From Basidiobolus meristosporus CBS 931.73 (Eukaryota > Fungi > Basidiobolomycota), in contig MCFE01000096.1 of the NCBI GenBank assembly GCA_002104905.1, forward strand, positions 1 through 64,000: a DNA stretch of 64,000 bases, read 5' to 3'. The notes below the pieces were generated by a model. It did not search any database. It was not told where the DNA came from and saw nothing but the letters and a program-made list of their open reading frames with translations. Shown in pieces: positions 1 to 52,118 of this stretch; position 1 is the stretch's first letter; every line of letters starts with the position of its first letter. Position numbers and translations under genes: made by a program.

Positions 1-910
1 TTTTTGGGGATTCATCCCTTTGTATCCGTTGTCTTTTTTCCGACATATATATAGAATCTGTCATGTCTTCTACTACGTTGACCTCTGAATGGCCCCGATA
101 TTTGCCTTCCTCTTGCGAGGTATTTCCTTCTCTTTGTGTATTTGTTCCTGCAGTTGGTACTAACTTGAAATAAGGACAGTCCCTCAACATATGTCCGGGT
201 TCTCCACAACCAAAGCATCTTCGTTCCCTTCTTGGAGAGTTGTGGTTTGAACTGGGGATAGAACTAGAATTTGTCTTCTGACTGGCTAACAAATTAAGTT
301 CCATTCGATCAAATTTAGCTGCCAGTTTATCCAGTTGACTATCCCATGACGTTGTTGGCGGAGTTGATAATGTTGCATGTGTTTTCTCATTGATATTTTC
401 CTTTGTCTGGCCTCCTAGACATTGTTCCTCCTCCTCAGCAAAAGCAATTGCTTCACCCAGAGTTGTGGGTCTACGTTTTCTGACCTCCATTCGGATCTTA
501 GAGTGAAGAACATCAAGAAACACTTCGATCTTATCTTCCTCCAGGGAGTATCCCAACCTTGCAAATAATCTTAATACTTTTGCGGCAATTTCCGCTACTG
601 ATTCATCTTTCTGTCGTAAATTCTTCAGGTTTTGACGCCATGCATCCATTCTTGCCATTGTAACGTATTTTTCCTTGAATCTTTGCTTAAAGGTTTCCCA
701 ATCTGTCAAAAGCCCTTCATTTTCTTCATACCAAGTAGCTGCCAGTTCCTTCATGTAAGCACCTGCAATCGTTGGAAGATCTGCTAGATCCCATCGATTT
801 GCTTTTTGACTTACTTCACATTCCCGTAGCCAAGCAATAGGATCTTCGGTCTGATATCCCGAGAAATCGCTAATTGTGACCAGTCTTCGTTCCCGTTGTA
901 GCGTGGTCAT
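1..910 (-). CDS. gag: Ty3/gypsy Gag with CCHC zinc knuckle, open past the left edge of the window
   Basis: Manual translation from the ATG at 910 (MTTLQRERRLVTISDFSGYQTEDPIAWLRECEV...ATWYEENE...WETFKQRFKEKY...CFGCGEPGHMLRDC...) finds no stop before position 1. It shows a retrotransposon-gag-like helix pattern and a CX2CX4HX4C knuckle. It is absent from the ORF track because it has no stop within the window. Confidence 0.88.
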   Translation of the reverse strand, partial: MTTLQRERRLVTISDFSGYQTEDPIAWLRECEVSQKANRWDLADLPTIAGAYMKELAATWYEENEGLLTDWETFKQRFKEKYVTMARMDAWRQNLKNLRQKDESVAEIAAKVLRLFARLGYSLEEDKIEVFLDVLHSKIRMEVRKRRPTTLGEAIAFAEEEEQCLGGQTKENINEKTHATLSTPPTTSWDSQLDKLAAKFDRMELNLLASQKTNSSSIPSSNHNSPRRERRCFGCGEPGHMLRDCPYFKLVPTAGTNTQREGNTSQEEGKYRGHSEVNVVEDMTDSIYMSEKRQRIQRDESPK

Positions 911-978: not shown

Positions 979-1306
979 TGTTACGTACTTAAAGAGTAAT
1001 GTCCTTTAGAGAGTACGAAAAGGGATAACCTATATGTTATCTTGTAGATTCGACGGGGTAGTGTAAGAATATCTCTTAAAAAGGTTAGGGTGGTGACTTC
1101 GTAGAAATATATTCAAACTAATATTCGTTCCTACTACGCTCTTCTGCCTATAACCAAAAACTCCCTTTTTATTTAGTTACTTGTTTGGTATTTATACCTT
1201 GTTGTGAGTCTGGTGATTTGTCTTTGATTTGTTTTTCCCTGGCTACTAAGTCGTCTTTGTATGCGTTGATGTCACTTAGCATCGAGTGACTCTTTACTCT
1301 GTAACA
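979..1306 (-). mobile_element. 5' LTR (328 bp) of the Ty3/gypsy element
   Basis: Bounded by TGTTAC...GTAACA inverted termini (TG...CA), adjacent to the PBS and gag. The right end coincides with the point where identity to the second tRNA unit begins. Confidence 0.88.
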
Positions 1307-1317
1307 CTCCCAACTGT

Positions 1318-1389
1318 GGCTCAATGGTTTAGTGGTATAATTCTCCCTTAGGGTGGGAGAGGTCCCGGGTTCAATTCCCGGTTGAGCCC
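1318..1389 (+). tRNA. trnP: tRNA-Pro(AGG)
   Basis: GGCTCAA/TTGAGCC acceptor stem, anticodon arm ctccc-TTAGGGT-gggag, GGTTCAATTCC B box, followed by TTTT. Confidence 0.96.
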
Positions 1390-1640
1390 CTCTTTTGCAT
1401 TTCCATTCAAAATTTTTGATGGCAAGTACGTGTACCAACTCTATTATGTATAGTAGTTCGAACCATATTTTTATGTGGAAGTACTTTGGATGTAAATTTG
1501 TAATGGCATATTTACATGTCATCTACTGTGAGGATTTTGGTTTGCATCAATTTCAGGCAAAGGATTCGTTTACTATCTAGAGAATCACCTTGCCATGTGG
1601 GTGTACATATTAGAAAACATTTCCTTCTATTCACATAAAT

Positions 1641-1712
1641 GGTTTCGTGGTGTAATGGTTAGCACCCAGGACTTTGAATCCTGTAATCCGAGTTCGATTC
1701 TCGGCGAGACCT
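1641..1712 (+). tRNA. trnQ: tRNA-Gln(TTG)
   Basis: Cloverleaf; anticodon arm cagga-CTTTGAA-tcctg; T4 terminator. Confidence 0.95.
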
Positions 1713-1862
1713 CTTTTATGCACATTGCATTCTCCAGATACTTTTGCATTTCAACTCTCACAAATAACAGCGCCTTCATTTTACAACGTAGACCGTGTCA
1801 GGATTATTCGAATTCTAGCTGGTTTGGACTTGTGTTGGATAGTGGCACCCACCTTCGATAAG

Positions 1863-1944
1863 GACGATATGGCCGAGTGGTTAAGGCGTATGACTAGAAA
1901 TCATATGGGCTCTGCCCGCGCAGGTTCAAATCCTGCTGTCGTCG
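1863..1944 (+). tRNA. trnS: tRNA-Ser(AGA)
   Basis: Long variable arm; anticodon arm tatga-CTAGAAA-tcata; only AATTT before the next tRNA. Confidence 0.96.
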
Positions 1945-1949
1945 AATTT

Positions 1950-2023
1950 GCTCGCATAGCTCAGTTGGTTAGAGCGTGGTGCTAATAACGCCAAGGTCGC
2001 AGGTTCGACCCCTGCTGTGAGCA
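1950..2023 (+). tRNA. trnI: tRNA-Ile(AAT)
   Basis: Anticodon arm tggtg-CTAATAA-cgcca; T6 terminator. Confidence 0.96.
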
Positions 2024-2348
2024 TTATTTTTTATCCAGGCTGGCAGTCTTCATACTCCTACAAGAAAACGGTAGCAATTACATGCATCGCAAAGGGTGCA
2101 CTGCATCCACCTTCCCCCTAATCAATGTTATAGTCAGTTCGCACACCTACCTTATTTTGATGTTCTACAGGCGCATCTGATTTCGAATTTATGCTTTGCT
2201 GGTATTGTGCACTACCCATATTTTTTAACAGAATGAGTTGGCTACCTTGAACTCACAGTGTGGAGATGGGAATGATATGTAAGTCTGAACAATAACAGAA
2301 GACTGCGTTGTATCTAAAATCAAATTCTACAACAAGTATAATGTATCA

Positions 2349-2420
2349 TCTCAGATAGTATAGTGGTAAGTATCCCCGCCTGTCACGCGGGAGACCCGGG
2401 TTCAATTCCCGGTCTGAGAG
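2349..2420 (+). tRNA. trnD: tRNA-Asp(GTC)
   Basis: Anticodon arm cccgc-CTGTCAC-gcggg; T-run downstream. Confidence 0.96.
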
Positions 2421-2656
2421 TTTTGTTTTAGCTGTCTTGGGTACATCAAAATTATACTTTGACTGTTCTTGAGTTCGTGTACTCAACGGTACGCACTAAA
2501 TATGACATGACGCTAAGATAAAAAAAACTCTTACAAAATGGGCCGTAGCTTGTATCTATACAGGTCGTTATTTTTATAGAACTACTAGTGTGGTTGATCG
2601 ATATGGATGTAAAGAGCTACTTTGATTAAACAAGTACTGGTTTTTCTAGCAACAAC

Positions 2657-2729
2657 GGGCGTATGGCCAAATGGATAAGGCGCCTGACTACGGATCAGGA
2701 GATTCCAGGTTCGATCCCTGGTATGCTCG
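2657..2729 (+). tRNA. trnR: tRNA-Arg(ACG)
   Basis: Anticodon arm cctga-CTACGGA-tcagg. Confidence 0.95.
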
Positions 2730-2943
2730 AAGTTATCTTTTGTCATCAGCGTGTACAGATAAATGCTAAGCATGTTTACCTCTTCCTAAGCGATTCAATA
2801 AATCCTATGGATTGATGATTTTTCTGCCCGAGAATAGTACGTAGTACAAACATATTCTTCCATATATTGTCCGATTCATTTTCTACAACTTTACTCGCTC
2901 AGCAATGTAATCATAATCTAAGCCTCGGTCTTACAGACGTAAA

Positions 2944-3014
2944 GCATACTTGGTTTAGTGGTATAATTACCGCCTGCCACGCGGTAGACCGGGGTTCGAT
3001 TCCCCGAGTATGCA
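2944..3014 (+). tRNA. trnG: tRNA-Gly(GCC)
   Basis: GCATACT/AGTATGC acceptor stem; anticodon arm accgc-CTGCCAC-gcggt. Confidence 0.96.
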
Positions 3015-3576
3015 TTTTATACTTTTCCACTATGGTACCTTTTTGCATAACTGTATTCCTCAAATGGTTCGTTTTCCGGAACTTAATAGCTTACCAATAT
3101 GCATGTCTACTATACATTATGTTGGGTCACTACACTATTGGAAAAATGGAAAGATGGTAAAATGGTTAGGGTTAATGAAGACATACAAATCGATATTTTC
3201 AGAGCCGCTGCAAATCCTATAGTCCATCGCTAAAACATTTTAGCATAACCGCTTTGAAACTTTGTGATCTACCGATAATCCTCCACTGATTAGCTACGAG
3301 TCGAACCTACAGCATGATTGCTTGACACAGGCGCACTTCCAGAGCTACCGTAGATGCCTGTAGTATTAATTCGTTGAAATAGAAATCAAATATTGTGCGG
3401 TTAGCAGTTAGTTGGGCCCTATGTCACCGCTCTATCATTCTTGTATAAAATATAATGTGAAAGATCCTTCCAAGCTGCCATCTCATTCACAAATTCAAGT
3501 AGTTAGCCGAATCACATATTAAATGTATAAGGTATCTTGCAATATAGCACGTGTTTTCCATTCATCAAACAGTAAT

Positions 3577-3649
3577 GCCTCCTTGGCTCAGTTGGCAGAG
3601 CGTCTGCCTAGTAAGCAGAAGGTCGCTGGTTCGATTCCGGCAGAAGGCA
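3577..3649 (+). tRNA. trnT: tRNA-Thr(AGT)
   Basis: Anticodon arm tctgc-CTAGTAA-gcaga. Confidence 0.95.
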
Positions 3650-3782
3650 TTGAAATTTTTGGTCTCTATTATTTTTTACTGAGTTTAAGTGGAATTCATG
3701 AATTGTACAATTGTGATGCATGGCGGGTTGAAAAATCATTTAGACAAGTCGCAAATTGACTGTTACAAGAAACAAAAAGCAA

Positions 3783-3865
3783 TGAAGAGAGTGGGATTCG
3801 AACCCACGCCTCCGAAGAGATCACGGCCTTAACGTGACGCCTTAGACCAACTCGGCCATCTCTCC
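3783..3865 (-). tRNA. trnL: tRNA-Leu(AAG)
   Basis: Reverse complement gives GGAGAGATGGCCGAG...; anticodon arm tcacg-TTAAGGC-cgtga; long variable arm. Confidence 0.95.
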
Positions 3866-4182
3866 ATTTACGAAGGGACCTGTGCAAGGCCTATGTAGTA
3901 TGTAATGGTCATAGTCACATTCATTTGATTTGTGCGTGCGCTAGAGTATTATCAAAATAGAGGTTGCAATTCGATAGCTGTATATGTGCTCTGAGTATTT
4001 CTTTCTTACGCCAAAGTACAACAGTTGGAGGATTTGTTTGAGTTTACGGTCAGATATTATCGCGATTCAGTCTACAAAATAAATGGGCAAACAAGGTATT
4101 TAGGAAACGAAGGTTGGTGATTCAAGGAATTCAGATAGAACATAGGATACACTAATCATAACTTTCCTATCGGTTTATCCAT

Positions 4183-4267
4183 CCGAACATAGCTCAGTTG
4201 GTAGAGCGGAAGACTGTAGTGTTACATAGCAATCTTTAGGTCCCTGGTTCAAATCCGGGTGTTCGGA
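4183..4267 (+). tRNA. trnY: tRNA-Tyr(GTA) with a 12-nt intron (4220-4231)
   Basis: Anticodon arm gaaga-CTGTAG[tgttacatagca]A-tcttt; the intron is at the canonical 37/38 position. Confidence 0.93.
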
Positions 4268-4441
4268 CTCTTTTGTATTTTATTCAAAAATTGTATACCC
4301 TTGTGGTGAAGTTATCAAATGACCAAGCACTAGTGGTATTGCCCTCATCGAGAGAGTATGCACACATCATACAGGTCGTTAAGAGTATATTTTGCTACCC
4401 TGGAGGTTTTAAAAGATTGCATACAAAAAATATCAAAAGAG

Positions 4442-4515
4442 CGCTCCTGGGTGGGCTTGAACCACCAACCTCCTGATTAACAGTCAGACGCGCTAGCCAA
4501 TTGCGCCACAAGAGC
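4442..4515 (-). tRNA. trnN: tRNA-Asn(GTT)
   Basis: Reverse complement gives GCTCTTGTGGCGCAATTGG...; anticodon arm tctga-CTGTTAA-tcagg. Confidence 0.95.
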
Positions 4516-4739
4516 AACTTGAATACAAGTGAAGGATGTATCATCTTATGGTTATAGAATACACAAGTATAGCAAGGCATATGGAATTCATTTCTTGCCG
4601 CATAATACTTGCAAGCTGTAAGTCTTGTTTCAGTTATGATTGATCGATTGATTGTTCCCCGACAACCAAGGGTACTTCCTAATTTTTTACATTGGCGGCA
4701 TCCGTTGACATATACGGCAAGCTGCCCTTGTAACAAGTA

Positions 4740-4812
4740 GCCGTCTTAGCTCAGTTGGGAGAGCGTCAGACTGAAGTTCTGAAGGTCCTGCGTTCGATCC
4801 GCAGAGACGGCA
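4740..4812 (+). tRNA. trnF: tRNA-Phe(GAA)
   Basis: GCCGTCT/AGACGGC acceptor stem; anticodon arm tcaga-CTGAAGT-tctga; no intron. Confidence 0.95.
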
Positions 4813-4996
4813 TTTTTGATTCAGTTTCAATGTTTACTTCTTTACCGTTACCTAAATGATCTACCCAATTACAGATCAAAGTGGTGTAAGCCTCGGGTCT
4901 GTTCTCATACTTTTTTTTTTGAAAACTTCTGTTACCTTGCTTTTTCTCTGACCAATTTATATTATATTGCCACAACTGGAACCTGGTGTGTAACAT

Positions 4997-5069
4997 GCCC
5001 GGCTAGCTCAATCGGTAGAGCGTGAGACTCTTAATCTCAAGGTTGTGGGTTCGACCCCCACGTTGGGTG
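4997..5069 (+). tRNA. trnK: tRNA-Lys(CTT)
   Basis: GCCCGGCTAGCTCAATCGG...; anticodon arm tgaga-CTCTTAA-tctca. Confidence 0.96.
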
Positions 5070-5232
5070 ACTCCTTTTTTCTTCAATTATTTTGAGTCCC
5101 TTTCAATAGTGTGCAAATTCGGTATAGTATTGCATTGCTTTTCCCGAAAAAATCTGCTATCACTTGAATTAGGCCAAGGTAATTGGAATCTCCTCTGCTT
5201 GGAGGGTGTTTATGTACAGCAAAATGATACCT

Positions 5233-5305
5233 TGGAGGACCTGGGTATCGATCCCAGTGCCTCTCGCATGCTAAGCGAGCGCTCTACCATCTGAGCTAGA
5301 CCCCC
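5233..5305 (-). tRNA. trnA: tRNA-Ala(AGC)
   Basis: Anticodon arm ctcgc-TTAGCAT-gcgag; G3:U70 alanine identity pair present; one U:U mismatch in the acceptor stem. Confidence 0.93.
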
Positions 5306-5632
5306 ATTTGTACTGCAAGTTAAAGAACGTATATTGAATATTGCATTAGCATTCCATCTTGCTTATGTCTTGCACTAAGCTCATATGCAGGACAAAAGTT
5401 TTGCGAATTTCTGACTGCCCCACTGTTGTTTTCTCTCAATACCAGCTTGTTAGATGTTGAGAGATATAATTTGCATATTTGGGTCACAGGCGCAGTATGA
5501 GGTCTCCACAAATAGATCAGGTAGCTGAAGGATCCAGCCGTTGCGATATAGAGATACCTTTAGGAATGGAAGAGCGTACTTGTATAAATTTACACATTTA
5601 CAGCAGTAACCTCGGTAGTAACTCCCAACTGT

Positions 5633-5704
5633 GGCTCAATGGTTTAGTGGTATAATTCTCCCTTAGGGTGGGAGAGGTCCCGGGTTCAATTCCCGGTTGA
5701 GCCC
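5633..5704 (+). tRNA. trnP: tRNA-Pro(AGG), copy 2
   Basis: Identical to 1318-1389. Confidence 0.96.
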
Positions 5705-5955
5705 CTCTTTTGCATTTCCATTCAAAATTTTTGATGGCAAGTACGTGTACCAACTCTATTATGTATAGTAGTTCGAACCATATTTTTATGTGGAAGTACT
5801 TTGGATGTAAATTTGTAATGGCATATTTACATGTCATCTACTGTGAGGATTTTGGTTTGCATCAATTTCAGGCAAAGGATTCGTTTACTATCTAGAGAAT
5901 CACCTTGCCATGTGGGTGTACATATTAGAAAACATTTCCTTCTATTCACATAAAT

Positions 5956-6027
5956 GGTTTCGTGGTGTAATGGTTAGCACCCAGGACTTTGAATCCTGTA
6001 ATCCGAGTTCGATTCTCGGCGAGACCT
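5956..6027 (+). tRNA. trnQ: tRNA-Gln(TTG), copy 2
   Basis: Identical to 1641-1712. Confidence 0.95.
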
Positions 6028-6177
6028 CTTTTATGCACATTGCATTCTCCAGATACTTTTGCATTTCAACTCTCACAAATAACAGCGCCTTCATTTTACA
6101 ACGTAGACCGTGTCAGGATTATTCGAATTCTAGCTGGTTTGGACTTGTGTTGGATAGTGGCACCCACCTTCGATAAG

Positions 6178-6259
6178 GACGATATGGCCGAGTGGTTAAG
6201 GCGTATGACTAGAAATCATATGGGCTCTGCCCGCGCAGGTTCAAATCCTGCTGTCGTCG
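6178..6259 (+). tRNA. trnS: tRNA-Ser(AGA), copy 2
   Basis: Identical to 1863-1944. Confidence 0.96.
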
Positions 6260-6264
6260 AATTT

Positions 6265-6338
6265 GCTCGCATAGCTCAGTTGGTTAGAGCGTGGTGCTAA
6301 TAACGCCAAGGTCGCAGGTTCGACCCCTGCTGTGAGCA
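6265..6338 (+). tRNA. trnI: tRNA-Ile(AAT), copy 2
   Basis: Identical to 1950-2023. Confidence 0.96.
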
Positions 6339-6650
6339 TTATTTTTTATCCAGGCTGGCAGTCTTCATACTCCTACAAGAAAACGGTAGCAATTACATGC
6401 ATCGCAAAGGGTGCACTGCATCCACCTTCCCCCTAATCAATGTTATAGTCAGTTCGCACACCTACCTTATTTTGATGTTCTACAGGCGCATCTGATTTCG
6501 AATTTATGCTTTGCTGGTATTGTGCACTACCCATATTTTTTAACAGAATGAGTTGGCTACCTTGAACTCACAGTGTGGAGATGGGAATGATATGTAAGTC
6601 TGAACAATAACAGAAGACTGCGTTGTATCTAAAATCAAATTCTACAACAA

Positions 6651-9560
6651 CTGCCAGGTCCTTCACCAATACTGTGACTGAGTGCTTCTCAGGTTGAACT
6701 GCATTTTTTCCTAGTGAATGCTACACTTGTAACTCAGTATCTGCCTGCTTGTCCCTTACCAGTACTCTGCAGGCTACCTGACATTTCTTTGTCACTTGTT
6801 TAGAGCTTTCAGCCCTGCTTGTGATGGGCCCTTGAGGATGCTGCTGGTTTTGAGCTGCAGCACCCATATGCTTCTGCCTTTGATAGTCTTTGTTAATGTT
6901 GATATACTTACCTAGAACACCTATGTAGGCCCAAAATCTGTTGCTTGTTTGAATTCAGGATAATGCATATGGAGCAGATCAAGTGCCTTCTGCCTGGCTT
7001 TGAGCTCTTGATTGACTCATGATATGCCAGCCTTGAGGAGATGGCATGCTAGATTCCCTATGAAAAAAACTTAGAAAAGGCCAGCAAAATACCATTAGGA
7101 TATCAGCTGAATTCCAAGTTCTCATAATTGACAACTCTCAATATATCTGTTGTTAGCTGATGGGCAGGCAAGCAAACTAATTCTCCAGGAGGAGGCTATG
7201 CCAACCAGCATCTGTACCAAATTTGGTAATTAGCTGCCCATTACTTCCATCAAAAATTTCATTGAAACTCTGAATCAAAAACATCAGCTGAATACCTGCA
7301 AAATACCATTGATATACCAGCAGCATATCAGCTGAAAATCAGATGAATTCCAAATTTGCAATTTTTTATAGGAGCTCTCTCACAGCCTCTTGATTATTAG
7401 CTCACTCTTCTCAATGGCTTTCCATATCTTGAATGTTAGTCTACTCTTCATTGTTGCACTGAATGGCTTCATGGATCCTCAATGTATTTTGGCTTTTAGG
7501 CTTTAGTATATATATCATAGTCTCACCCTCCCATGCAATGATAGGTTTTTCTATGGGCCTTATCTTTGAGCATTGTTGTTGTGCTTCAAAGACTTTACTG
7601 TGTTCCTCTGCTGTTACATTGGGAAATGGCTCAATTTCTGGATTGGACATTTAGCTACTAGCATGCCTTCTTTGCAGCCTAAGTACCATGTTCTCTACCT
7701 GTGATATTGATTGCTCTACACATATCATCTACTCATCCTGTTTTGGGACTACTTCCTGATTTCTCTGGGCTATTGCATCTATCCTAGTAGTCACTGCACC
7801 TTATTGGTGCATGAATACTTTGATATGAACTGCCAACATACTTGCTAATAATGGTGGTGGGGATCTTATGACAGTTATTTGCTGGTCTTCCACCTGAGAT
7901 ACCGCATTTGCTACATTCTCATCTGCCTGAGCATTATGGTCTCCTTGTATTGCCATAGAGATTCTCAATTGTCTACTTGACTGTGAGACTAAGGAGCTCT
8001 CAATATTACCCACAGTGAGCACACTGTCATTATGGCCTTTTTTGGATGCAGCCCTGCTTATTGCACTCAGTGTCAAAGCAAGCTGCTGTCCAACCATTTT
8101 TTTGCAGTTGTTTGCAGGGGGTTTAGCTGGGAACCAGATAAGCTTGCTTTATTTTTGTCAGTATGTATATGGAAGTGAGTCAAGCCAATAGGGAATCAGT
8201 ATTACATATATGTGCATATATGGTGCTATAGCTTTAGTTATGATGCTGATTATGGTGAGTCATTACTGAACCTTACATACCTGTAGGTGTACTATCATAA
8301 GTACAAGACTTTCTTATACTCAAATGAATATTTTCAAAAAGGTAATATAATAGCATTACATTGTTCAGTGTCAAGCTACTTGCCATGTGGACAAGTCTGC
8401 TAAGATTCTACATCATAAGAGAAGGGAAAAAAGTCCATGGGATTATTAAAAAAAGCCTTTCTGCCATAAAGCACATACAATGTCATAAAGCACATAAACA
8501 GTGTAGGAAGTAATACAAGGGTTGTGGCCAGTGTTTTGCCACACAAGTCACATTTGAGCATCCATTAGTCATCACTTTGACAATAATAGCTTGCCAGCCA
8601 CATGGCACTTCTATGAAGGTACCTAGCTGCACTTGTCACCTTGCTCAAACCAAGTCTAGTGAGCTTGTGGCACCTTCTGGCTCACCTCTGCCTTTGAAAT
8701 ATGGTCTGCACAGTGATAACTCTGAAATGAAGGCTCACTGATGGATTGAAAGCCTATCTCCCAGCATAACAGTGCACTGGATGGGACATGCAAATCCCAA
8801 TATGTGACAGGACTACACCTATAGAAAAAATGCCAAAGATACTTTATTGAGCCAAGTGAGCCCAGTTATCCATTTATTGGAAAGCAATGCTTCCAGTATT
8901 ATCACTTATGAGGACTTTGAGGAGTTACTGCTACTTCTTGCCAAAATCATTCCAGGATGCAACTTACTATGTACATGGTACAAATGGACAACCATCATGT
9001 AGCTGGCAACATATGACCCAGAGACTTTGCTAATACCAGTGTAATTTAAAAATTGCATGATATTTACATCAGAAAATGTCACAATTACAAGGTATCCTAC
9101 TTGTCAGGGCTCCACCACCACAGGAGGAAAACATTGTTAGGTACCATACTTTTGTTCAATGAATCTGCAAGTGAATAGAGTGTAAATTCTCTAGTTGTCT
9201 ACACCACACCTGATGCTCCTCAGACTATTGCAACAGCAGTGGGTAAGCAAACAAGTGGGGGAGAATCTATAGGGAACATATGAATGGCACAAGGGGTGGT
9301 AGAAATGGGAAAAACAGTCTAGTAAGTTTGAATAGTACCAGTATACAGGACTAACTATAGGCTGCTGTACAGCTATTATAATGCCAAGAGATGTTTGAAT
9401 TAAGGTCATCAAAAATGGTGTCAAGTTCTCTTCCATATTGGCAGTTGCATATATTGGCCAGTAGGTTCAGCTCAACTATGTGTAGACCACATAAACACTG
9501 TTGGATTGCCATACTTAAGGACTATAGAGCACTGTCAATTTATTACCCTAATGGGCAGTA
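6651..9560. mobile_element. Decayed CACTA/EnSpm-like DNA transposon, copy A (transposase remnant on +, second ORF remnant on -); ends approximate
   Basis: Reverse-complement similarity to 18800-19900 and 56700-58300 (for example caagtgacaaagaaatgtcagg). Cys-rich transposase N-terminal remnant at ~8850-9200. CpG almost absent. Confidence 0.6.
7056..7373. mobile_element. MITE-like insertion with CCCTAT.AAAAAA terminal inverted repeats
   Basis: Interrupts a segment that is contiguous in copies B and C (GAGGCTGT...TCTAGCA). Ends are ccctatgaaaaaaa and ttttttatagga. Contains repeated ATCAGCTGAA-like motifs. Confidence 0.55.
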
Positions 9561-9637
9561 AAACAGCAAAACACCATCACAATATTGTCATAAGAATGGG
9601 AACAAGGCCAATAACTATAAGCAGCCAGCATACTGAC

Positions 9638-9985
9638 TGTTGCAAGAGCCTTGGAGATATTGGAAGTGATTGGGAGAACAAGTAGATTATGTGGTTTTCA
9701 CTTAATGATTTATTGAATGTAAAAGTAGTATTTATACTTTAACATGATCTTGGCATTACAAGCATGTAGAATAGGTTAAGGAAGGTCCCAAGAACATGTG
9801 TGCAAAGTTTGAGGCTGTTGGAAAAACCTTGAGATTTTCATATTCTGGGTACCTGGTATTTTGGTGAATTTATTCTAGGTAAATCCCAACAAGGAATTTG
9901 ATTAGTATTCTCTAGGATTTGAAGGTAATGATCTAAGTGACTAAGTTAGGTGAATATTTAGGTGGAAATACAAATCTTTACAACA
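9638..9985 (-). mobile_element. Solo LTR of the copia family
   Basis: TG...CA, 348 bp, reverse-complement homologous to LTR 46603-46951; flanked by ctgac/atgac (5-bp TSD with one mismatch). Confidence 0.85.
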
Positions 9986-11400
9986 ATGACAGTCTCATTG
10001 TGAGATCTCAACAGCCAATCCAGATTAGATTCACCTGCAAGACCAAATTATTCTTTATAACAACCAGGAAAGACACTCTATTGTTATCTTCCTTATTGAC
10101 CTTAGTAAGCTGTTTCTTTGACAGTGAGTTCCCCTTATTGGCCAATTGTGTTGGTAGGCAAGCATGTGGCCTCAAGGTGACCCAGCTATTGCCTTCCTTG
10201 ATTGTAACCTTCTGTGTCTCCAATCTATTGGGAGCTTACCCAGTTTCCTAACTCTGCCTTGAGATTGTATCAAGGTTAGCCATTGGTATCACTACAGGGG
10301 TTATGGTACTGGCATATGCACCTAGCATTAGCCCAATTGGCTTAGTTCTGTGGCTTGCTTGTTCAGGATTTTGCACTGCAAAGCAGATTATGTAAGGTTG
10401 CAATGTAATTTCAGGGGCTGTTACTGTTTAACTAACACCTTGGATATGTCTATGCCAACTGCTTCACTATCCAAGAGAACATTGGCTGATGTGTTACTGA
10501 CAGTTCCTTCCAATACTAAAAGCTCTGGATGGTTCAGTGGGCTTAGAGCATCAGCCACATTCATTATTTGCATATTACAATTGCTTTTTTGGATAGATTG
10601 AGTTGTACTCCTTATTTGTAGTTGCATAGGACAGTCCTGAAGTAGCTGACCATGTTTCTAGCAATAAGATAGAGACCTTTGCTCATGCATTGTACTTCAG
10701 ATATTGTGCCCTGTTTGTGTAACACTATCATGTCTAGGACCATAGGGTTTAGGTTAGATATGCAGAGCAGTATAGCATTAGTTGGCTTCTCTGCCACCAC
10801 TCTGGAGCTTCTATGAGTGGTTTGATACAGTGGAGTGTAATGTCAATCAAAGTGAATATAGTCATATGGCTCAACCTTGGCCATGATCTTGGGCAAGATA
10901 GATAATGGTATGTGGTGTATAGGAACATGAGAATTATTGATGCAACACTTCTTAAATTCTTTGTATGAGGTGTGCTCACTGGGCACAATAACCTTTAGCA
11001 AAAGCTTGCTAGGAATACTTGGGTTTTGCCTCCACTCTACTGCCAAGGGAATTAAGTCACAAGCTTGTCAAAGAAATGCTATTGAGCCACAATCCCCAAC
11101 TTAGCTGGCATCATAGCAAAAGTATGTGCAGGACTTAGCATCTTGCAGGTTGAGAATATATTACAGCTTTCAAAGTCAAAATAGCTGTAAATTCCACCAG
11201 CACTGAGTTAATAAGAATGCTGCTTTGGTTAATAGTTATAAAGACATGAAAGTGTCTCTGTCTGTTCAGGCTCAACTATAAGTGAAATACAATATAATAA
11301 CAGATACTTATTTTGAGTGTTCCTCTTTAGTAGTGCCCCCAAGCTCAATTGGCTGTTAGAATGGCTTCCTAGGAATGAACCATGGTCTGGGACTAAAGGT
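9986..11400 (-). pseudogene. Decayed Ty3/gypsy gag-protease remnant; extent approximate
   Basis: ORF fragment LLVLEGTVSNTSANVLLDSEAVGIDISK resembles a retropepsin (LLDSGA motif), with a degenerate knuckle-like segment upstream; heavily mutated. Confidence 0.45.
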
Positions 11401-13059
11401 CAGATAGGAGCAGGTAGTAGTGACTTCACTACTCAGCTAACTGGAATATTAAAAAAAGGATGATGACTTGTAGTAAAGGAGTGTCTCCCTTAAATACTTC
11501 TTGGATTGGCTAAGTGATAACTAATTTTGGTGTTCCAGAAGGTTCTGGAAATCATGAGAAGCCTTGATGACATTATAACAAGCACAAATCTTTTTAAGCA
11601 GGTTTCAGAATGTTCTAAAAGGCACACCACATTCCACCATGCAGGGATCAGTATTCTGGAACCTGTAGAGCAAAGAGAGAATGTTTATGGAATTAAATGG
11701 TCAGGATGGTGGCATAGTATGTGTACTTGCCTGCTATAGATGGCTCCATTTGTTGTAACCATACATAAGGTGGGGGATAGCTTGAGCAATGGAATAAGCA
11801 GAAGCAAGAGTTAGCTAGCTTGTAGGCCAATGCTGATCAATTAAAGTAAATGGGATACTACTGAGCTTAAGGTAGTTGAAGAATAACAAAGTCAAATATA
11901 TGGAAATGAGCTTATTTATCAGTGGGTGGCACTATGACCCCTCTATAACAGTACTCAACTTCTGAGTGTGGCTGGTAATATAGGCCTGGATGCAATGTTC
12001 CATCTGGTTGGAGTCAGATATACTGAGGATTATGAGCATCAGTGTGTAGAATTGTTGGTTATAGTCCCAGACAGACCTTTTCTATTCCAACTATATAACT
12101 TATATCTTGCATTTCACACTATATTGACTAGGATAAACTGTGTTTGGAGTGCTGACACAAAGTTATCCCAAATTTCTATGCCTGAGAACAAGTTCCATGC
12201 TGTAACCTACATAAAAAGCTTCCATTAGGGAGTAGCTTCCTTTTGAAAAAAGGTGGCTGCAAGGCTAATCTTGACCATGTCAGGATATGCCAAGAATATA
12301 AAGTGTATTTCTTGACCCTGGTCCAGGCTTAGAATGTTCTAACAGAAATAATTTGGTCTTGCAGGTGGATCCAGTCCAGATTAGCCATCAGGATCACATT
12401 GTGAGGCCATTGCTTTCCAGCAGCTTGGAATATATGATCCTCTTCAAAATCATATGGCAGGATTATGGTAGTGACTTTCTGGTTTTACTGACAGCTACAG
12501 TAACAAACTTGGCAGTACTTTGACCATGTTTCACAGGGCTTGTCTGGCATTCATATGGTCTTAATGCGGTCTCCTTTTGCTTGAGCAGGTGTAACAAGCC
12601 TATTCATGGCTTCTCAGTGTAATATTTGCAAAGTTGCAATATGTCTTTTACTATTAATAACATCTATATCATGTAAATATATGCTTGATTGTAGTCACTT
12701 TGGCCACAAATACATCTTGAGTATCCTCAAAAGACTTTTTAGTACCTAACCAATATATTTCTTTTCCCTGCTGAGTTCAAGTGCCCCTTATAGATGCACT
12801 CAGGTACTTGCTTGTGTGAATTTTATGTTGAAAGGTGTAGAAGTTACTTGTGACCAGGAGAAACCTGTCATACCTTGGTAAAGTAGTCCTAATGGCAATC
12901 AGGTGCTTGTTTAGTCCAACCCAACCTCCCCTTACTTACCTGATTACCTATGCATTGGGGCTGCTTAGCTTCTTATGGCTAAAGGCATAGGTTTCTTAGT
13001 GTGCATACTGGTGCTTAGTATTGTCCAACTCATCTGATCTGTCTACAACATGACAAACT

Positions 13060-16000
13060 TGTTGTAAGAATCCTGGAGATATTGGAGGTGATTGGGAGAA
13101 CAAGTGGATTATGTGGTTTCACTTAATGATTTATTGAATGTAAAAGTGTATGTATACATTTACATGGTCTTGGAATAACAAACACATAAAATAGGCTAAG
13201 GAAGGGCCCAACAACATGTGTGCAAAGCTCAGAGCTGTTTGGACAGCTTTGAGAATTTTCATGTTCTGGGTACCTGGTATTCTGGTGATATTATTCTAAT
13301 TAAGTCCCAACAAGGAACTTGGTCAGTATTCTCTAGGACTTGGAGGTAATGATCTAGTGACTAAGTTAGGTGAATATTTTGGTGGAATTACAAATTTTTA
13401 CTACGCTCCTACTCAGCTAAATGCTCATACTGACTAGTCCTAATTTTGACTCAAGATATTCAAACTTGTCTCTAGCTAATGGTTTGGTAAATATGTCTGC
13501 AATCATTTCATCTGGATAACAGTAAGTCAAGCTAACTAAGTTATTCTCTATAGTTTCACATATCAAATGATGTCTAATATCTAAATGCTTAGTTCTAGCA
13601 TGAAAAGTTTGACTTCTACCTATTTGTATGCATCCTTGATTATCTTGAAATAAAGTGATAGGCATTTTTTGACTTAGGCCTAGGTCTGTAAAAAGCTTTC
13701 TTGACCAAATTGCTTCTCTTGTAGCTTCACAGGCTGCCATATACTCTGCCTCTGTGGTGGAAAGTGCTACAGTTGGTTGCTATCTTGAATTCCATGAAAT
13801 TGCCCCTTTACGGTAAAGAATGGTGTATCCTGTGGTGGATCTTCTGTCTTCCAAGTTTTGTCCCCAATCAGCATCAAAGTATCCCACAATATCCTGTTGT
13901 GAGCTCTTATGTGTCTTAAGCAGATATCAGCAGTTCCTTTCAGATATTTAAAAATCTGCTTAAGTGCTGCAATATTATCAGATCTATAGTTCTGATTATG
14001 TTGGCTGACAACTCCCACTGAATATGAGATATCTGGACATGTTCCAAGCATGATACTCATCAGACTGCCAAACATAGATTGATAAGGAAAGTCAGGGCTT
14101 TCAGATGGCACTGAGATCTCTTGATTTGGTTGAGTTTTGACTAAGTTAAGGTTTGCCTCCATTGAGGTAGCTGCTGGTTTACAGTCTTCCATTAGATACT
14201 TCTTGAGTATATCTTGAATATACTTGGATTGGCTTAGGTTGATAGTCTGGGTACTTCTGTCTATGGAGAACTTAATCTATAAGTAGTAACTGAGTTCTCC
14301 TAGATTGGACATCTTGAACTGTTTAGATAGGCTGGATTTAGTCTCTTCCAATGTTGCTAGGTTATTGGTGTCTATAATAAGATCATCCACATATAGAGCT
14401 AATAGAGCAGGATTAGCTCTATCTGGCTTATTGTATATACTATAGTAAGCATTACTCCTTTTGAAACTCAAAGATTCCAAATAAGAATCTATCTTACAAT
14501 TCCAGGCTCCTGGTGATTGCTTGAGTCTATATAGACATTTTTTAAGCTTGCATACCAAATGGGGGCTATCTTGGTCAATAAACCCATGAGGCTGGTCCAT
14601 ACATGCATCCTCATCAAGCTATCCATCCAAAAATGCAGTTTCTACATCCATTTGATGTATAAAAATCTTATATTTGTCTTCAATAGTTGATATCAATCTG
14701 ATGAAATTAAACTTGGCTACCAGAGCAAAGGTCTTTGTATGGTCAATTCCTTTTGTTTGAGAGTATCCTTTGGCCACAAGTCTTGATTTGTATCTTTCAA
14801 TTGTACCATCAGCCTTCTATTTTGTCTGAAAGACCCATTTGCATCCAATTGACTTTTGGTTGATAGGTAATATGACTAAGTCCCAAGTTTGGTTGTCCAT
14901 CAGGGCCTGATACTCCTCAGTCATTGCAGATCTCCAAAACTTTGTCAGAGAGCTATTTAGGGCCTCTTTACAACCTGTGGCTCAATGATATGGACTGAAT
15001 AGGAATAGGCTAAGTTTGTACCCTCATTGATATAGTAATTTGGGCTATTTCTTGTCAGGTTGGATCTCCAGGCATTGGGTATTGGAATGATCACTTCTGG
15101 GATATTCCTGGGCACTGATTCAGGCTGAACCACAGTTGTAGAGTCCTCTGGAGTGAAAAAGATTTCATTGTTTTGCTCTAATTCAATGCTGACCAATGGT
15201 GGACTTGAGATCAAATTTTGTCATCATCTGATATCATTTTGTGAGTTTGAATTTTGATCAAACAACACATCCCTGGACTTGATCAGCTTCTTTGCTTTGA
15301 TACTGAAGAGTCTGTATGCTTTACTCTCATTGCAGAAGCCCAAAAATATGCATTTTTCACTTTTTGGCTCAAATTTTGACTTATTTCCAGGCCACTTCTT
15401 GGCATATGCTGTACACCCAAATATTTGTAGATGTTCTGCACTTGGTCTGTATCCATACCATGCTTCATATGGAGTGGAATCACAAAGTATTCTGCTATAA
15501 CTCCTATTCTTATAGTGTACAGCTGTGACAACTGGTTCTGCCCAAAAATCATAGGCTAATTTTTGATCATTGATCATAGATCTGGCCATATCATTTATTG
15601 AGCTGTTTTCATGTTCTGCTACTTCATTTTGCTGTGGGGAGTATGGTACAGTAGTTTCTTGCTTTATCCCATGAACTTTGTAGAAGTGGATAATGAGTTT
15701 GAAGGTATATTCTCCACCATTGCCAGAGCATATTTTCTTGACTTTTTCACCTGTTTCTCTCTGCACCATGGCTTTGAGGTCCCTGAACTTAGACAGAGCT
15801 TCTTCCTTTCTCTCCATGAAGGTAGACTCACAAGTATCTTGTATAATCATCAATAAAAGTGAATAAATACTTCATCATGCTTAAGGATAAATTTAGAACA
15901 GGTCCACAGAGATCTGAGTGAACTAGATCTAATTTTTCTTAGTTTTGGTTAACCTAGTGCTCTTGAGCAGGTTTCTGGCTTGTTTCCCATATATGCAGGC

Positions 16001-17732
16001 TTTACAATGCTCCAAATCAGCTGGGGGATCAATTTTTACTCCAGGAAATTAGCTGATCTTTGATTATTTTGCACATATAATCAAAATTGATATGTTCAAA
16101 TCTCTTGTGCCAAAGCATTGGTGTTTCTTCATTTAAGTTACTTATTTAGCTTCCAAATATGATGGAATATATGTTAACTTATACAGATTCTGATCTCTGA
16201 TACCCAAAGCAATATGGGCACCATTTTGATCAGGGATCCTGCATCCAGAATTGCCAAAGCTGAAACTGAGTCCTTCTGCTGTGGCCTTGCTTACAGATAG
16301 TAGGTTTTGGCTATTTCTGGTACATAGAGCACTTCTTTAAAGTCTAGTGTATGGCGTCCTTCACTGCTTCTAAGGTTTACTTGGATAGTTCCTTCTCCCA
16401 CTGCATCAAGTGTTCTATTGTCACCCATGAAAACCTTCTCAATAGGAATTTTCTGATATTGGGTAAAAAGTTCTTTTTGGTGTGTAAAGTGTTGAGATGC
16501 TGCATAGCTAATATACCACATCTGAGAACTCTTGTTTGTGGTCATATCTGGTACAGATATGAATAGTCTATATTCAGTTGTTGCAGCATCTCCATATTCA
16601 GACTTTTTCTGCTGACTATCTCTCTTTTTCAAGCACCAGTCTGATGTATGTCCTTTCCTTTTGCAGTAGTTACAAAACAGGTAGTTGTTGCCTTTGAAAG
16701 ATCTGGGGTATTATCCTTTGTGGTTATCATTGCTTATTCAATCATTTTCTTCTTCCTTCTTATTGGCACTAGATTTTCTTAATACTTTATCCAGGAGCCT
16801 TCCATACACATAGTTTAAGGTCAAATCTTCAGTTTTGGACTCCAAAGCAGATACAAGGCCCTGAAACCTGTCTGTCAGGCTATTCAGGATGATTACTATC
16901 ACATCCTCATCAGTAGTTGGTACACCCACATATTGCATCCTATCCACCAGCAGGGTAATTCTGTTAATTAGATTTTTCATTTCTTCTCCAGACAGCAACT
17001 TTGTAGCAAAAGAGTTTGCATCAAGGATACATTTTCTTAGCAGCTGAACATGACTGGTAGGTGTCTTCTAATACCTTCCAGGCATTCTTTGCTGCTTTTG
17101 CTCTTGATGCATTGAATTAGCAATTTGTCTTTAACATTATGGCAAATGCAGTTAAAGACACTTTGTTCTTTCCTCCAGTACTTTGAGGCTTCCTCTCCCA
17201 CACTTTTACAAGGGCATTCTTCTCCCATGACAATATCCTAAAGGCCTCTTTCTTGTAGCAGCATCCTCATCATCACCTTCCACACTTGGTAGTTAGATCC
17301 ATCCAACTTTTCAGCAGAGGGAAAAATTCCAGTAATAGCAATAGTAGACATTGCAGGGAGTGACAGTTTGGGGCTCATAACCTGTTGTAAGAGTCTTGGA
17401 GGTATTGGAAGTGAATGGGAGAACAAGTAGATTATGTGGTTTTCACTTAATCATTTATTTGAATGTAAAAGTAGTATTTATACTTTTACATGGTCTTGGC
17501 ATTACAAACACATAGAATAGGCTAAGGAAGGTCTCAAGAACATGTGTGCAAAATTTGGGGCTGCTTGAACAACTTAGAATATTTTCACCAGAATACCAGG
17601 TACCTGGAACATGAAAATTCTCAAAGTAAATCCCAACAAGGAATTTGGTCAGTATTCTCTAGGATTTGAAGGTAATGATCTAAGTGACTAGGCTAGGTGA
17701 ATATTCAGGTGGAATCACAAACTTCTACAGCA
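13060..17732 (-). mobile_element. Decayed full-length Ty1/copia element (3' LTR 13060-13405, 5' LTR 17383-17732)
   Basis: Fragmented gag, PR, IN (GGEY...YSPQQNEVAE), RT (YVDDL) and RNase H (ADIFTKPL) ORFs; PBS GGTTATGAGCCC; many stops and frameshifts. Confidence 0.93.
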
Positions 17733-19900
17733 AAGTTACCATGTCAATGATGGACTTGAAGGTAGTATTGTTGATGCAACTGGGATATGGCAGTACTTGC
17801 AATTTAACTTGTCTTCCTATCTGCCTATACATCCACTCCACAGTATTCTCCCAAAAGCTGAAGCAAGGTCCAAACTTCTCCACATACTAAGCAAGATGGA
17901 GTAGAGAATACTTACAGTAGTGGCAGAGATTTACATGCTCAGCTTTGTGCTTGTAGTTGTGCTGCTCAAATCCCATCACAAGCTCCTTGTACAAAAGCTA
18001 TAGATATGCTGAGGTAGTATTGGTGATCCACTTCTGGATAAATACTCCTGCAATATCAAAATATGACCCCTGATGCTTCCAATATACTCATGACAGAAGT
18101 TGCTCTAGAAGTCCACTGGAATAAATGCAAATCCCAATGATCCATTCCTTCATTGTATTGCTGCATATGTGTATGAATAGTAATTGGAGTTTGTGGGAAG
18201 TGCATTGGGTGGTACAAGCTTAGTAACATGTTGCAAATTCTTTCAAATCTCTCTGGTATCTGAAAGGGCTCATATAGCCTGAAGTTCCTCAAGTACAACT
18301 TGGTCATCAGTACTGGGATACTGTTTCATAGCAAATGCATTGCTCCCAGTGGAAAGCTTTTGCTCCAACAGATTCCCCTATCTTAAATGTCACTGGTTTT
18401 TGATCAGATCCATATTCTAGTCAGTTGCTTATAGCATGCCAGCCTTGCTGCAATTGCATGCTAACTTCTGTAAGTTTTCACTGTAGATAGATGATGCTGT
18501 TGGTGCTGGTGTCAGGACAATAATGCATATGAGTTATAGAGTAAATCCCCTGAATCTTGCACAATCAACAGCAACACTACTCATTGTGCCCAGAAAAGCA
18601 AGCTATGTTGGTGAGAGGTGGGGTGTCTTTAATGCAGTTAATAAATATGCTTTGACAAGACTGCCAATTACTAATATACAGCTGGACAGCATATGGAACT
18701 CATCCAGCAATAGATGCAGGTTTCTATCCAGGTTGAACAGTGATTTAGGCCCCAATATGAGTGAGACAACCATCAGATTTTAGCTCTGATACCATAAGAT
18801 TGGTGAGAGATTCAGATTAGCAAATACTGAGTGCAGTTCTTTATAGCTGCAGAAAATTTGTTGGACTGCATGAGTTTCTTGAGACAGTGCATTATTGGAA
18901 TAAATCCAGAGTGTGAACAGTGTTTTCCTCCCATGGTGGTGGATTCCTGACAAGTTGAGCACCTTGCAATGGTGGCATTTTCTGATGTGAGTGCCATGCA
19001 ACTGCTAATACATGGTGGTATCAGAACAGTCTCTGAGTCACATGTTGCCAGCTGCATGACAGTTGTCCATTTGTACCAAGTACATGGTAAGTGGTATCCT
19101 GGATTAATTTTGGCAGGAACTAGCAGTGCATCCTCACAGCACCAATTGCTAATATTGGTAGAAACATGCAACTTCTCTGGCCACTGCATTACCTCATACA
19201 CCTGTATTTGGCATTTCTTTCACAGGTGTTGTCTCATTGCATTTGGAAGTCTTGCCAGTCTCATGTAAGGTACTGTTGCTGTGAGATAGGATGAGTAGAT
19301 GATGCATATAGAGCCATCAATATCCCAGGTAGAGAATGTAGTATCCTTGCTGTAACAAAGGAACTCAAGTAGCTCAATGTCACAGACCAGAATTAAGCTA
19401 TTTCCCAATGCAACAGCAGAGGAACACTGTAAAGTCTTTGAAGCACAACAGTGCTATAAAGCCCACAAAAGCCTATCATTGCATGGGAGGGAGAGACTTT
19501 GATATATATAGTAAAGCCTAAAAGCCCAAATACATTGAGGATCCATGAAGTCATTGAGTGCAACAATGACAAGTGGGCTAACAATCAAGAGGCTGTACGC
19601 AGTCTAGCATACCATCATCTGAAGGCTGGCATACCATGGGACCATCAGGAACTCAAGGCCAAGCAGAAAGCACTTGATCTGCTCCATGAGCATTATCATG
19701 GATTCAAACAAGCAAACAGATTTTGGGCCAGCATTGGTATGCTAAGAAAATACCTTAAGAATAGTAGAGCTATCAAAGGCAGAAGAACAAGGGTGCAACA
19801 GCTAAAATATTGGTACCCAGCATGTAGACCTTTGAAGTGGGCCTATAATGTAGTGTTTTCCAAGGCTAAAAGATGCTTCAGATGAATAGATAGAGTATGT
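17733..19900. mobile_element. Decayed CACTA-like transposon, copy B; ends approximate
   Basis: Minus-strand remnant ...IPPCISSCMALTSENATIARCSTC...; plus-strand ORF 19499-19885 (AVRSLAYHHLKAGIPWDHQELKAKQKALDLL...) shared with copies A and C. Confidence 0.6.
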
Positions 19901-20632
19901 GACTGCACTAGAAAGTTACCAATCACTTGGATTGTAAGAAATTCAAACAAATATTAGGCAGAATTGCCAGGATTCTAACAGGCTTATGTAGAAGCCACAC
20001 CATATAGCTAATTAGTAGAATGTAGATTGTCAACTGGATCATTATTTCATTGATGAATTTTTTGATCTAGTGAAGCCCTCATCGAACTTATCTGAGAAAT
20101 GTGATACCCAACAACAATCAGGAACGAGAATGAGGATGGTGAACAGTATGATTAGTTCACACGCTAGCAATCAGAACGTGTCTACTGCAACCTTAGAAAA
20201 AGACAAGCGATACAGTCAACCAAGCGAGGGCATAGGTGCTGACATACGCTAGACATGGCGCGTATGGAAAAGTCGGTATTCAACGGACATATCGGAAATT
20301 TAGCAGCGAGCATTCTAGGGGCATTGATGCGTCGTCTCCTTTTACTCCGGTTACTGTTGCGGGGTGACTGATAATATTGTCTGATGCGGGGTAGAGTGGC
20401 ACAAGCATATACGCCTGATTGAGAGAAATCCACGATCTTACAGTTGTCAAACAGATCTCAGGCTGGTGCTCCTCGATCTTACTCGATAAAGATAGATGGC
20501 CATGCAGCAACGCAGGAATCCCACGAGTATAAATACCGGAGAAGCGCTCCTCCCGACAACAACAATAGCTTCAGTGTGCCACCTATTCTATTCTTATTTA
20601 TATTAGAACGTTTCTTCATAGACCCCTAGATT

Positions 20633-30257: not shown

Positions 30258-30653
30258 GCCACGACAGAGTCTGCGAAGAGACAAGGGAGGAGTGTATTGT
30301 ATAGTAATAATCGACCAGGTTGGCGCACTCTGTTTTGCATGTAAATAGCGTATTTAAAGAAACTTGTACATTTCCCGTGTTTTTGGTATTTTACTTATAA
30401 AATGTTCGCCATTGCGAAGTCCACCACACTATTCCTGAAAGTGCGATTTCCATTGAGGTTGTCGGTAAATTTGGTTGCAATCAGAGGGCTGCTTTGCATT
30501 GCACGAGCGCATTAAAGAATTCGCCTTCAATGGCGATGTTTGTTATAAATATTGAGAGATACTGGCCTTCTCACATCAGTTACAACTCTCTGGGTCATCA
30601 CTTTTGCATTCCACTTCATCCGCATCCGCATCCACATCCCACTTCATCAAGCC

Positions 30654-31214
30654 ATGCATTTCTCCAGCATCTCCATCGCTCTCATCCTCTCCACCGTGTC
30701 GAGTGTTCTCTCCGTCCCAGTACAGAGCTACAACCGCTACGATGTGGAGGATGGCTACAACAATGGCGAGTATGAGATGGACCACAGATACACCGACTAC
30801 CCGGAGAACTACGGCAAGGACAACGAGGTCTATCGCTGGGATGAAGCGGACTACAAGAGGAGGGAGGAGCTCGAGTACGACAACGAAGCTGAGTACGTTC
30901 CCCTACGCGAGTCCAAATATGGAGGGGAGCGTGGACGTGAGCACGAGTACGAGAGTGAGCGCGAATATGGCTACGAGCGCAACGGAAGTGATGATCCGGA
31001 ACCAAGAAGACCACTATTCGAGGAAGAGCCAGTCGACCAGGAGAACATGAAGAAGGGGCCAGTTGCCAACGAGGAGGCAAAGACAGCCTCGCCTGAGTCC
31101 CAGCAGAAGGATACCACCCCAGCCTCCACAGGAGTTACCGATGAAAAGGTGATGCCAGCATCGGGCCCTGACTGCCCAGGATTACTTGGAGTGTGTGTAA
31201 AGGTCAATCTGTGA
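30654..31214 (+). CDS. Secreted Tyr/Glu-rich protein, copy 1 (186 aa)
   Basis: Signal-peptide-like MHFSSISIALILSTVSSVLS; TATAAAT at 30544-30550; RYTDYPENY motif; ends CPGLLGVCVKVNL. Confidence 0.85.
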   Translation: MHFSSISIALILSTVSSVLSVPVQSYNRYDVEDGYNNGEYEMDHRYTDYPENYGKDNEVYRWDEADYKRREELEYDNEAEYVPLRESKYGGERGREHEYESEREYGYERNGSDDPEPRRPLFEEEPVDQENMKKGPVANEEAKTASPESQQKDTTPASTGVTDEKVMPASGPDCPGLLGVCVKVNL

Positions 31215-31568
31215 AGACTGTGGATCAGAATTATGATAATAATAGTAATAGGGATATGTATAGTAACACACAGCGGAAATAAATAAACGCCGTATGCTGC
31301 AGGGGCTTTCATCTCCATATATCCTTAAGGAGTTTAAAGCTTATTTTGTCAGATTTCCTCGGCTAAATAACGCCAACCTTGGGTGATTGGATCTGGCAAA
31401 AGATAATGGGTGCTGATTAAATGGGAATACTTGATACCAGTAGTCGCCGCTACCGAATATCCATATTACGCTTAGATTGGATTCAGATTCAATGCAAAAA
31501 GATAAGCTTTTCTTGGAATCTGGGCATTCGATTTATTTTCTATCAGATATATTCTTAATTATACGAAT

Positions 31569-46951: not shown

Positions 46952-46963
46952 GGTTATGAGCCC
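46952..46963 (+). promoter_or_regulatory. PBS GGTTATGAGCCC, complementary to the anticodon stem-loop of initiator tRNA-Met (also at 51286-51297)
   Basis: Directly abuts the LTR's terminal CA and lacks the TGG start of a standard PBS; same type as Ty5 and Drosophila copia. Confidence 0.8.
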
Positions 46964-46982
46964 CAAGCTGTCACTCTCTGCA

Positions 46983-47783: not shown

Positions 47784-47785
47784 AT

Positions 47786-52116: not shown

Positions 52117-52118
52117 AT

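Follow-up and report, generated by a model that had tools for sequence, protein, structure and literature searches.

Within the first 6.6 kb of contig MCFE01000096.1 (assembly GCA_002104905.1) of Basidiobolus meristosporus CBS 931.73 lies a tandemly repeated unit of 14 different transfer RNA (tRNA) genes, and this tRNA array was analysed here within a window of 64 kb, i.e., the whole stretch from position 1 to 64,000 of the contig. The locus is a transposon-bounded fragment of 1.24 units, consisting of one full 4315-bp unit and the first 24% of the next, rather than a demonstrated array of the ribosomal DNA (rDNA) type. The explanation that we favour, with a probability of about 0.6, is that this fragment is the surviving piece of a longer head-to-tail array which was cut by insertions aimed at the start sites of RNA polymerase III (Pol III).

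Gene content and extent of the repeat

The tRNA genes and the repeat itself were observed directly. Both ARAGORN and the Rfam tRNA model RF00005 agreed on 18 tRNA genes within positions 1318-6339, all of which scored 53-66 bits with RF00005 (gathering score, 29), and neither of them found a tRNA gene in the remaining 57 kb of the window. The order of genes 1-7 is Pro-AGG, Gln-TTG, Ser-AGA, Ile-AAT, Asp-GTC, Arg-ACG and Gly-GCC, that of genes 8-14 is Thr-AGT, Leu-AAG, Tyr-GTA, Asn-GTT, Phe-GAA, Lys-CTT and Ala-AGC, and genes 15-18 are a second Pro, Gln, Ser and Ile in the same order. Eleven tRNA genes of the unit are on the plus strand and three (Leu, Asn and Ala) are on the minus strand. The two copies are as follows.

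1307-5620, plus strand: complete array unit (period 4315 bp; 14 tRNA genes; spacers of 4-561 bp)
5621-6650, plus strand: partial second unit with Pro, Gln, Ser-Ile and spacer (identical to 1306-2335; 33 CpG)

The original prediction for this DNA, which had been made from the sequence, claimed 14 genes for 14 amino acids with none repeated, and among them seven tRNAs with A and five with G at wobble position 34 (A34 and G34). The first claim was borne out by ARAGORN and Rfam, and the anticodon calls gave the same count of A34 (n=7) and G34 (n=5) genes. According to our own arithmetic, the probability of never hitting the same amino acid twice in 14 draws, with all 20 being equally likely, is ~0.002, so the non-redundant set of amino acids is a real property of the cassette and unlikely to be due to chance. 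The prediction of an exact 4315-bp period with identical spacers also held. The base-by-base comparison of 1306-2335 with 5621-6650, at an offset of 4315, showed 0 differences in 1030 bp (1030/1030 positions match), and over these 1030 bp of the second unit the spacers are as identical as the genes. A single unit junction is assembled, at 5620/5621, and no further piece of the array unit was found by BLAST elsewhere in the 64-kb window.

The spacers between the array tRNA genes contained no 5S gene or other Rfam family, even at E<=1, and no microsatellite-like spacers were seen among them. Ten spurious open reading frames (ORFs) of the unit had no match in an exact look-up in the protein collection, and the homology search with the 113-aa ORF at 4398-4736 on the minus strand matched only tRNA-Asn translations in Rhizopus and Endogone.

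Ends of the repeat

Both junctions of the repeat with its flanks can be read directly, and each of them joins the array to a different element. The contig starts inside the left-hand one, a Ty3-like long terminal repeat (LTR) retrotransposon which is referred to as TE_L. Its assembled parts are listed here.

1-910, minus strand: open gag frame of TE_L (uninterrupted over 303 codons; continues beyond the contig start)
957-974, minus strand: primer-binding site of TE_L (18 nt, perfect complement of the tRNA-Ile(AAT) 3' end plus CCA)
979-1306, minus strand: 5' LTR of TE_L (328 bp; inverted termini TGTTAC...GTAACA; read from the sequence)

The assignment of TE_L to the Ty3 type is based on a gag with a CCHC knuckle, LTR ends of the form TG...CA and a tRNA-complementary primer-binding site. 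The gag frame matched the Pfam families Retrotrans_gag (1.1e-9), Ty3_capsid (2e-9) and zf-CCHC (2.7e-5), and the closest database representative is only 37% identical in gag; within the length range that was searched, the gag gave no match to another insertion. An exact match by script showed that the primer-binding site pairs with the array tRNA-Ile(AAT) at 2006-2023 on the plus strand, which is encoded 1 kb away. Host DNA starts again at 1307, where it abuts the TE_L LTR, 11 nt upstream of tRNA-Pro, and the empty site of the insertion is kept in the second copy at 5610-5632. TE_L looks young because its ratio of observed to expected CpG (CpG o/e) is still 0.72 (positions 1-1305). Judged from its position and its primer-binding site, TE_L would be targeted to the array and would also use a tRNA product of the array as its primer.

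On the right, the second copy breaks off 13-14 nt upstream of the tRNA-Asp start that is expected from copy 1, and a degenerate repeat, here called X, begins.

6651-9138, no strand assigned: degenerate non-coding repeat X (starts at most 1 nt from the end of the array copy)
6651-20082, no strand assigned: transposon block with its CpGs erased, which separates the array from the first protein gene (contents: X, a copia solo LTR at 9637-9986, a degenerate copia element at 13056-17734 and the inverted copy X')

The homology of X to its copies at 58354-56634 and 19807-18916 (70-83%) begins within 1 nt of the break, at 6650. Two other identities were considered for X. It was rejected as a decayed array copy, as no decayed tRNA remnants were found at E<=5 in it or anywhere else right of the array, and it has no BLAST similarity to the unit. 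It was also rejected as a decayed protein gene, for which there was one sub-threshold Amidase match (14.7-15.4 bits; cut-off, 27) that was not accompanied by collinear pieces, and this match was taken as chance.

By our own arithmetic, a breakpoint placed at random has a probability of ~3% of falling 9-17 nt upstream of any of the 14 genes, and for two independent breakpoints the probability is ~0.1%. Since both ends of the repeat lie at Pol III start sites, which is so improbable by chance, the repeat would once have run past both ends.

The copies of this repeat also show an association with copia elements. A copy (X, X' or Y) lies within 0-500 bp of a copia LTR at three places of the window, namely at 9637-9986, 17383-17733 and 55271-55619, where the copia LTRs are up to 93% alike and the X copies only 70-80% alike. 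Either copia prefers the X site as a target or there is some other linkage between both.

CpG contrast and age of the copies

The difference in CpG content across the right-hand junction is plain to see. Within the array, the CpG o/e was 0.93 for the tRNA genes and 0.70 for the spacers, as compared to 0.01-0.02 in 6651-20082, where only 6 CpG are left in 13.4 kb (0.01 in X itself). The last CpG of the partial second unit is at 6621, which places a sharp boundary at 6621-6651, and CpGs come back at 20083, which is 550 bp short of the first protein gene. Despite being a perfect repeat, the array was spared the repeat-restricted CpG loss of the adjoining block. The locus is for this reason a natural contrast for the study of genome defence, in which a perfect 1-kb repeat that has kept its CpGs adjoins 13 kb of almost completely CpG-stripped repeats. 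Further CpG-depleted blocks are found in the window at 42001-46600 (o/e 0.02) and 55620-64000 (o/e 0.10).

The degree of divergence also differs between the two sides of this boundary. The array copies show no difference at all in 1030 bp, as compared to 86.1% identity between the paired LTRs of the degenerate copia element next door, where 339 sites include 16 transversions. If X was still active as an element when it entered the array, then all of its decay took place beside copy 2, and in that case the identity of the copies requires homogenisation, and the array must have escaped the repeat-directed loss of CpG. This reasoning would point to concerted evolution of the array copies. The original prediction had proposed an rDNA-like cassette evolving in this way, for which the locus offers indirect support by the position of both repeat ends at insertions next to tRNA gene starts and by the absence of differences between the copies beside an old transposon block. 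The nucleolar organiser in Neurospora is spared by repeat-induced point mutation (RIP), which offers an analogy for a possible protection of the array CpGs.

A more far-reaching hypothesis can be put forward only tentatively, and we consider it possible rather than probable. Much of the decoding capacity of Basidiobolus may reside in a number of multi-tRNA cassettes, each non-redundant and amplified as a block, that are exempt, in spite of being perfect repeats, from the repeat-directed CpG erasure which hits every neighbouring transposon, being shielded by Pol III occupancy, and that double as landing pads and as a primer source for Pol III-targeting retrotransposons.

Signs of function

The 14 tRNA genes of the cassette are apparently functional and nuclear, and they are presumably expressed. 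The cassette contains 13 Pol III transcription units if Ser-Ile is counted as one, each of which has a run of four to six T (T4-6) at most 10 nt downstream. tRNA-Ser(AGA) alone shows no T-run of at least four in the 10 nt that follow it, and it is succeeded almost immediately by tRNA-Ile(AAT). Two genes need a separate entry.

1863-2024, plus strand: putative dicistronic tRNA-Ser(AGA)-tRNA-Ile(AAT) (spacer of 4-5 nt with no T-run between the genes; T6 after Ile)
4183-4268, plus strand: tRNA-Tyr(GTA) with a 12-nt intron (86 nt; 59.9 bits with Rfam)

The Ser-Ile arrangement recurs at 6178-6339 in the second copy. Its spacing and the absence of a T-run suggest co-transcription, and the pair is probably a dicistronic tRNA gene. 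A scan of metagenomes for a Ser-Ile junction with a spacer of 1-12 nt returned 0 matches. Dimeric tRNA genes are known in yeasts, i.e., Ser-Met(i) of Schizosaccharomyces pombe and Arg-Asp of Saccharomyces cerevisiae. The Basidiobolus pair is similar to them in that the genes are a few nucleotides apart and the first one lacks a terminator, and it differs in its composition, Ser(AGA)-Ile(AAT).

The tRNA-Tyr gene has the eukaryotic C1-G72 pair and A73, both read from the sequence, and an intron at the canonical position 37/38 gives the anticodon GTA. In intron mode, ARAGORN called the same interval as Asp(gtc) with a non-canonical intron at 35/36, and this call was rejected in view of the C1-G72 pair and the canonical 37/38 intron. 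Such a call is a trap for automated anticodon counts in the B. meristosporus genome.

The match of the cassette to codon usage was assessed with a sample of 2,479 codons, taken from six long stretches of ORF in the genic island that are not verified exon models. In this sample, C-ending codons predominate in all NNY pairs and boxes, and 74% of the Lys codons are AAG, so the A34, G34 and Lys-CTT genes serve the commonest codons. The original prediction had regarded the cassette as the main decoding set. This holds in the small codon sample for 13 of the 14 array anticodons, i.e., the seven A34, the five G34 and Lys-CTT, and fails for Gln-TTG, which misses the preferred codon because CAG accounts for 66% of the Gln codons.

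How the fragment may have arisen

If the locus is indeed the remnant of a longer array, that array would once have reached further on both sides of the assembled piece. On its left, the young Ty3-like TE_L, primed by the array's tRNA-Ile, would have been inserted just before tRNA-Pro, and on its right the old repeat X, now CpG-erased, would have been inserted just before the expected tRNA-Asp. The cassette would serve 14 amino acids with one tRNA each, in most cases a species with inosine (I34) or G34, and these read the preferred C/U-ending codons, and duplication of the unit would raise the dosage of all 14 tRNAs together. Recent unequal crossing-over or gene conversion would best account for the perfect identity of the copies beside an old and heavily mutated transposon block, and the rest of unit 2 may have been lost by later deletion or rearrangement.

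Several observations weigh against this reconstruction. Only 1.24 units are assembled at the locus, and its left side is unassembled, as TE_L is cut by the contig start. What should follow in unit 2, from tRNA-Asp onward, is absent from the 57 kb to the right, in intact or decayed form, and for this reason a deletion or rearrangement must be assumed. No Pfam domains and no recognisable LTR or terminal inverted repeat ends were found in repeat X, and the shared start of homology is the one line of evidence by which X would be a transposed element. In addition, a very recent duplication or the polishing of a PacBio consensus could give the same perfect identity.

An alternative is an assembly effect. 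The 1.24 units might be the collapsed form of a far longer array, or a mis-join might have arisen at the contig end, for example by merging of haplotypes with and without the Ty3 insertion. The locus is indeed in the first 6.6 kb of a PacBio-era contig beginning inside a transposon; the collapse of tRNA arrays is documented in assemblies of Schizosaccharomyces japonicus (PMC7619369), and Basidiobolus is reported to have a very large genome and nuclei that are at least diploid (PMC3281927). We consider such an effect unlikely, because the flanks are unique junctions with different elements, there are no N runs in the 64-kb window, and the junction at 5620/5621 requires one Pro copy that carries the Ty3 insertion and another that lacks it, for which a real array is a simple explanation.

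A one-off local segmental duplication, by which the first 1 kb of a single 14-gene cluster was copied once to its far end, would dispense with a longer array and with homogenisation. It agrees with the exactly 1.24 copies that are seen and with the lack of unit sequence further right in the window, and the 100% identity fits a very recent event. On the other hand, the duplicated segment must then happen to be bounded by the TE_L insertion site on the left and by the beginning of X on the right, with both limits 11-14 nt upstream of tRNA genes, and this coincidence has the chance of ~0.1% that was given above. We regard this duplication, too, as quite unlikely. The re-integration of an extrachromosomal circle, i.e., a one-unit circle from an array elsewhere that was replicated as a rolling circle, broken at arbitrary points and integrated in a transposon-rich region, would account for the undamaged CpGs of a 1.24-unit fragment that lies in an old transposon block from which CpGs were erased, but it is very improbable, since arbitrary breakpoints are expected, yet both lie at Pol III start sites and at element termini, and TE_L is young with an ordinary LTR end at the junction.

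Other features of the window

The genes beyond the transposon block allowed a comparison with Basidiobolus ranarum. The large XPB/RAD25 exon at 23005-24909 on the minus strand, compared as a single exon, is 96% identical to the B. ranarum protein and 100% identical to that of B. meristosporus CBS 931.73. The order HSF, kinase, XPB and Pro-rich gene is kept in a B. ranarum contig of 10.4 kb, which breaks within the orthologue of the Pro-rich gene and so ends short of the array side. In our window this Pro-rich gene, at 20633-22723 on the plus strand, encodes 696 aa, mostly in degenerate 9/18/39-bp repeats rich in Pro/Ala/Gly/Ser, and lacks Pfam domains. At 30543-33181, a segment of ~620-725 bp occurs three times in mixed orientation. 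The copies are 96-98% identical, overlap ORFs of 220-248 aa and look like a small local gene family in the genic island. Two copia elements lie in tandem at 46603-55619 and have the middle LTR in common. They are 97.5% identical over 4.7 kb and have kept intact ORFs for gag and pol (319, 899 and 1046 aa), yet the CpG o/e is already at 0.14.

Comparison with known systems

Ty3 of budding yeast and some other LTR retrotransposons are targeted to Pol III-transcribed genes, and the primer of Ty3 is the initiator tRNA-Met. TE_L resembles Ty3 in its Ty3-type capsid with a zinc knuckle, its tRNA-complementary primer-binding site and its position 11 nt upstream of a tRNA gene. The two differ in their primers, tRNA-Ile(AAU) for TE_L and initiator tRNA-Met for Ty3, and the contig start cuts TE_L off before its integrase and before its other end, where a target-site duplication would be expected. 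The locus would present a retrotransposon that both targets a tRNA array and is primed by a tRNA which the array encodes.

The Basidiobolus unit shares the features of tandem tRNA arrays in that it carries several different tRNA genes (14 in 4315 bp) and that these genes look functional. The tDNA repeat of Xenopus laevis measures 3.18 kb, contains eight genes and occurs in some hundreds of repeats. It is likewise a multi-gene and mostly non-redundant unit that is amplified as a block. Its genes lie on both strands, and every one of them has a Pol III promoter and terminator to itself. The differences are its eight genes, as compared to 14, its hundreds of repeats, as compared to 1.24 assembled units, and its animal host. 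In Entamoeba, different tRNA genes are likewise found in tandemly repeated array units, but the Entamoeba units hold at most five tRNA genes each, as compared to 14 here, have short tandem repeats between the genes and comprise almost all tRNA genes of the genome (PMC2652664).

The original prediction started from the premise that tandem tRNA arrays are known from Entamoeba and some vertebrates and that fungal tRNA genes are usually dispersed. This premise is outdated, as Schizosaccharomyces japonicus has such arrays (PMC7619369). Etherington et al. (2024, PMC7619369) reported 3,885 tRNA genes in its telomere-to-telomere assembly, mostly in tandem arrays among LTR elements. One example unit of 5.6 kb with 18 tRNA genes and three 5S genes is present in 34 copies, and the arrays were collapsed in older assemblies (PMC7619369). 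The likeness to Basidiobolus is that in both fungi multi-kb units of many different tRNA genes stand among LTR retrotransposons in gene-poor regions, repeated head to tail in S. japonicus and, as far as 1.24 units go, in Basidiobolus. The units of S. japonicus carry 5S genes and were measured at 34-46 or more copies, whereas the Basidiobolus unit is without 5S and has 1.24 copies assembled, and the hosts are an ascomycete and an early-diverging fungus, respectively. The gene orders share at most one adjacency (Leu/Tyr), so the arrangement in Basidiobolus probably arose independently of that in S. japonicus. We found no published description of nuclear tRNA arrays for Basidiobolus or any other early-diverging fungus. 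Should the unit be amplified at other sites of the genome, Basidiobolus would represent a second and independent lineage of fungi in which tRNA dosage is set by copying whole multi-gene cassettes.

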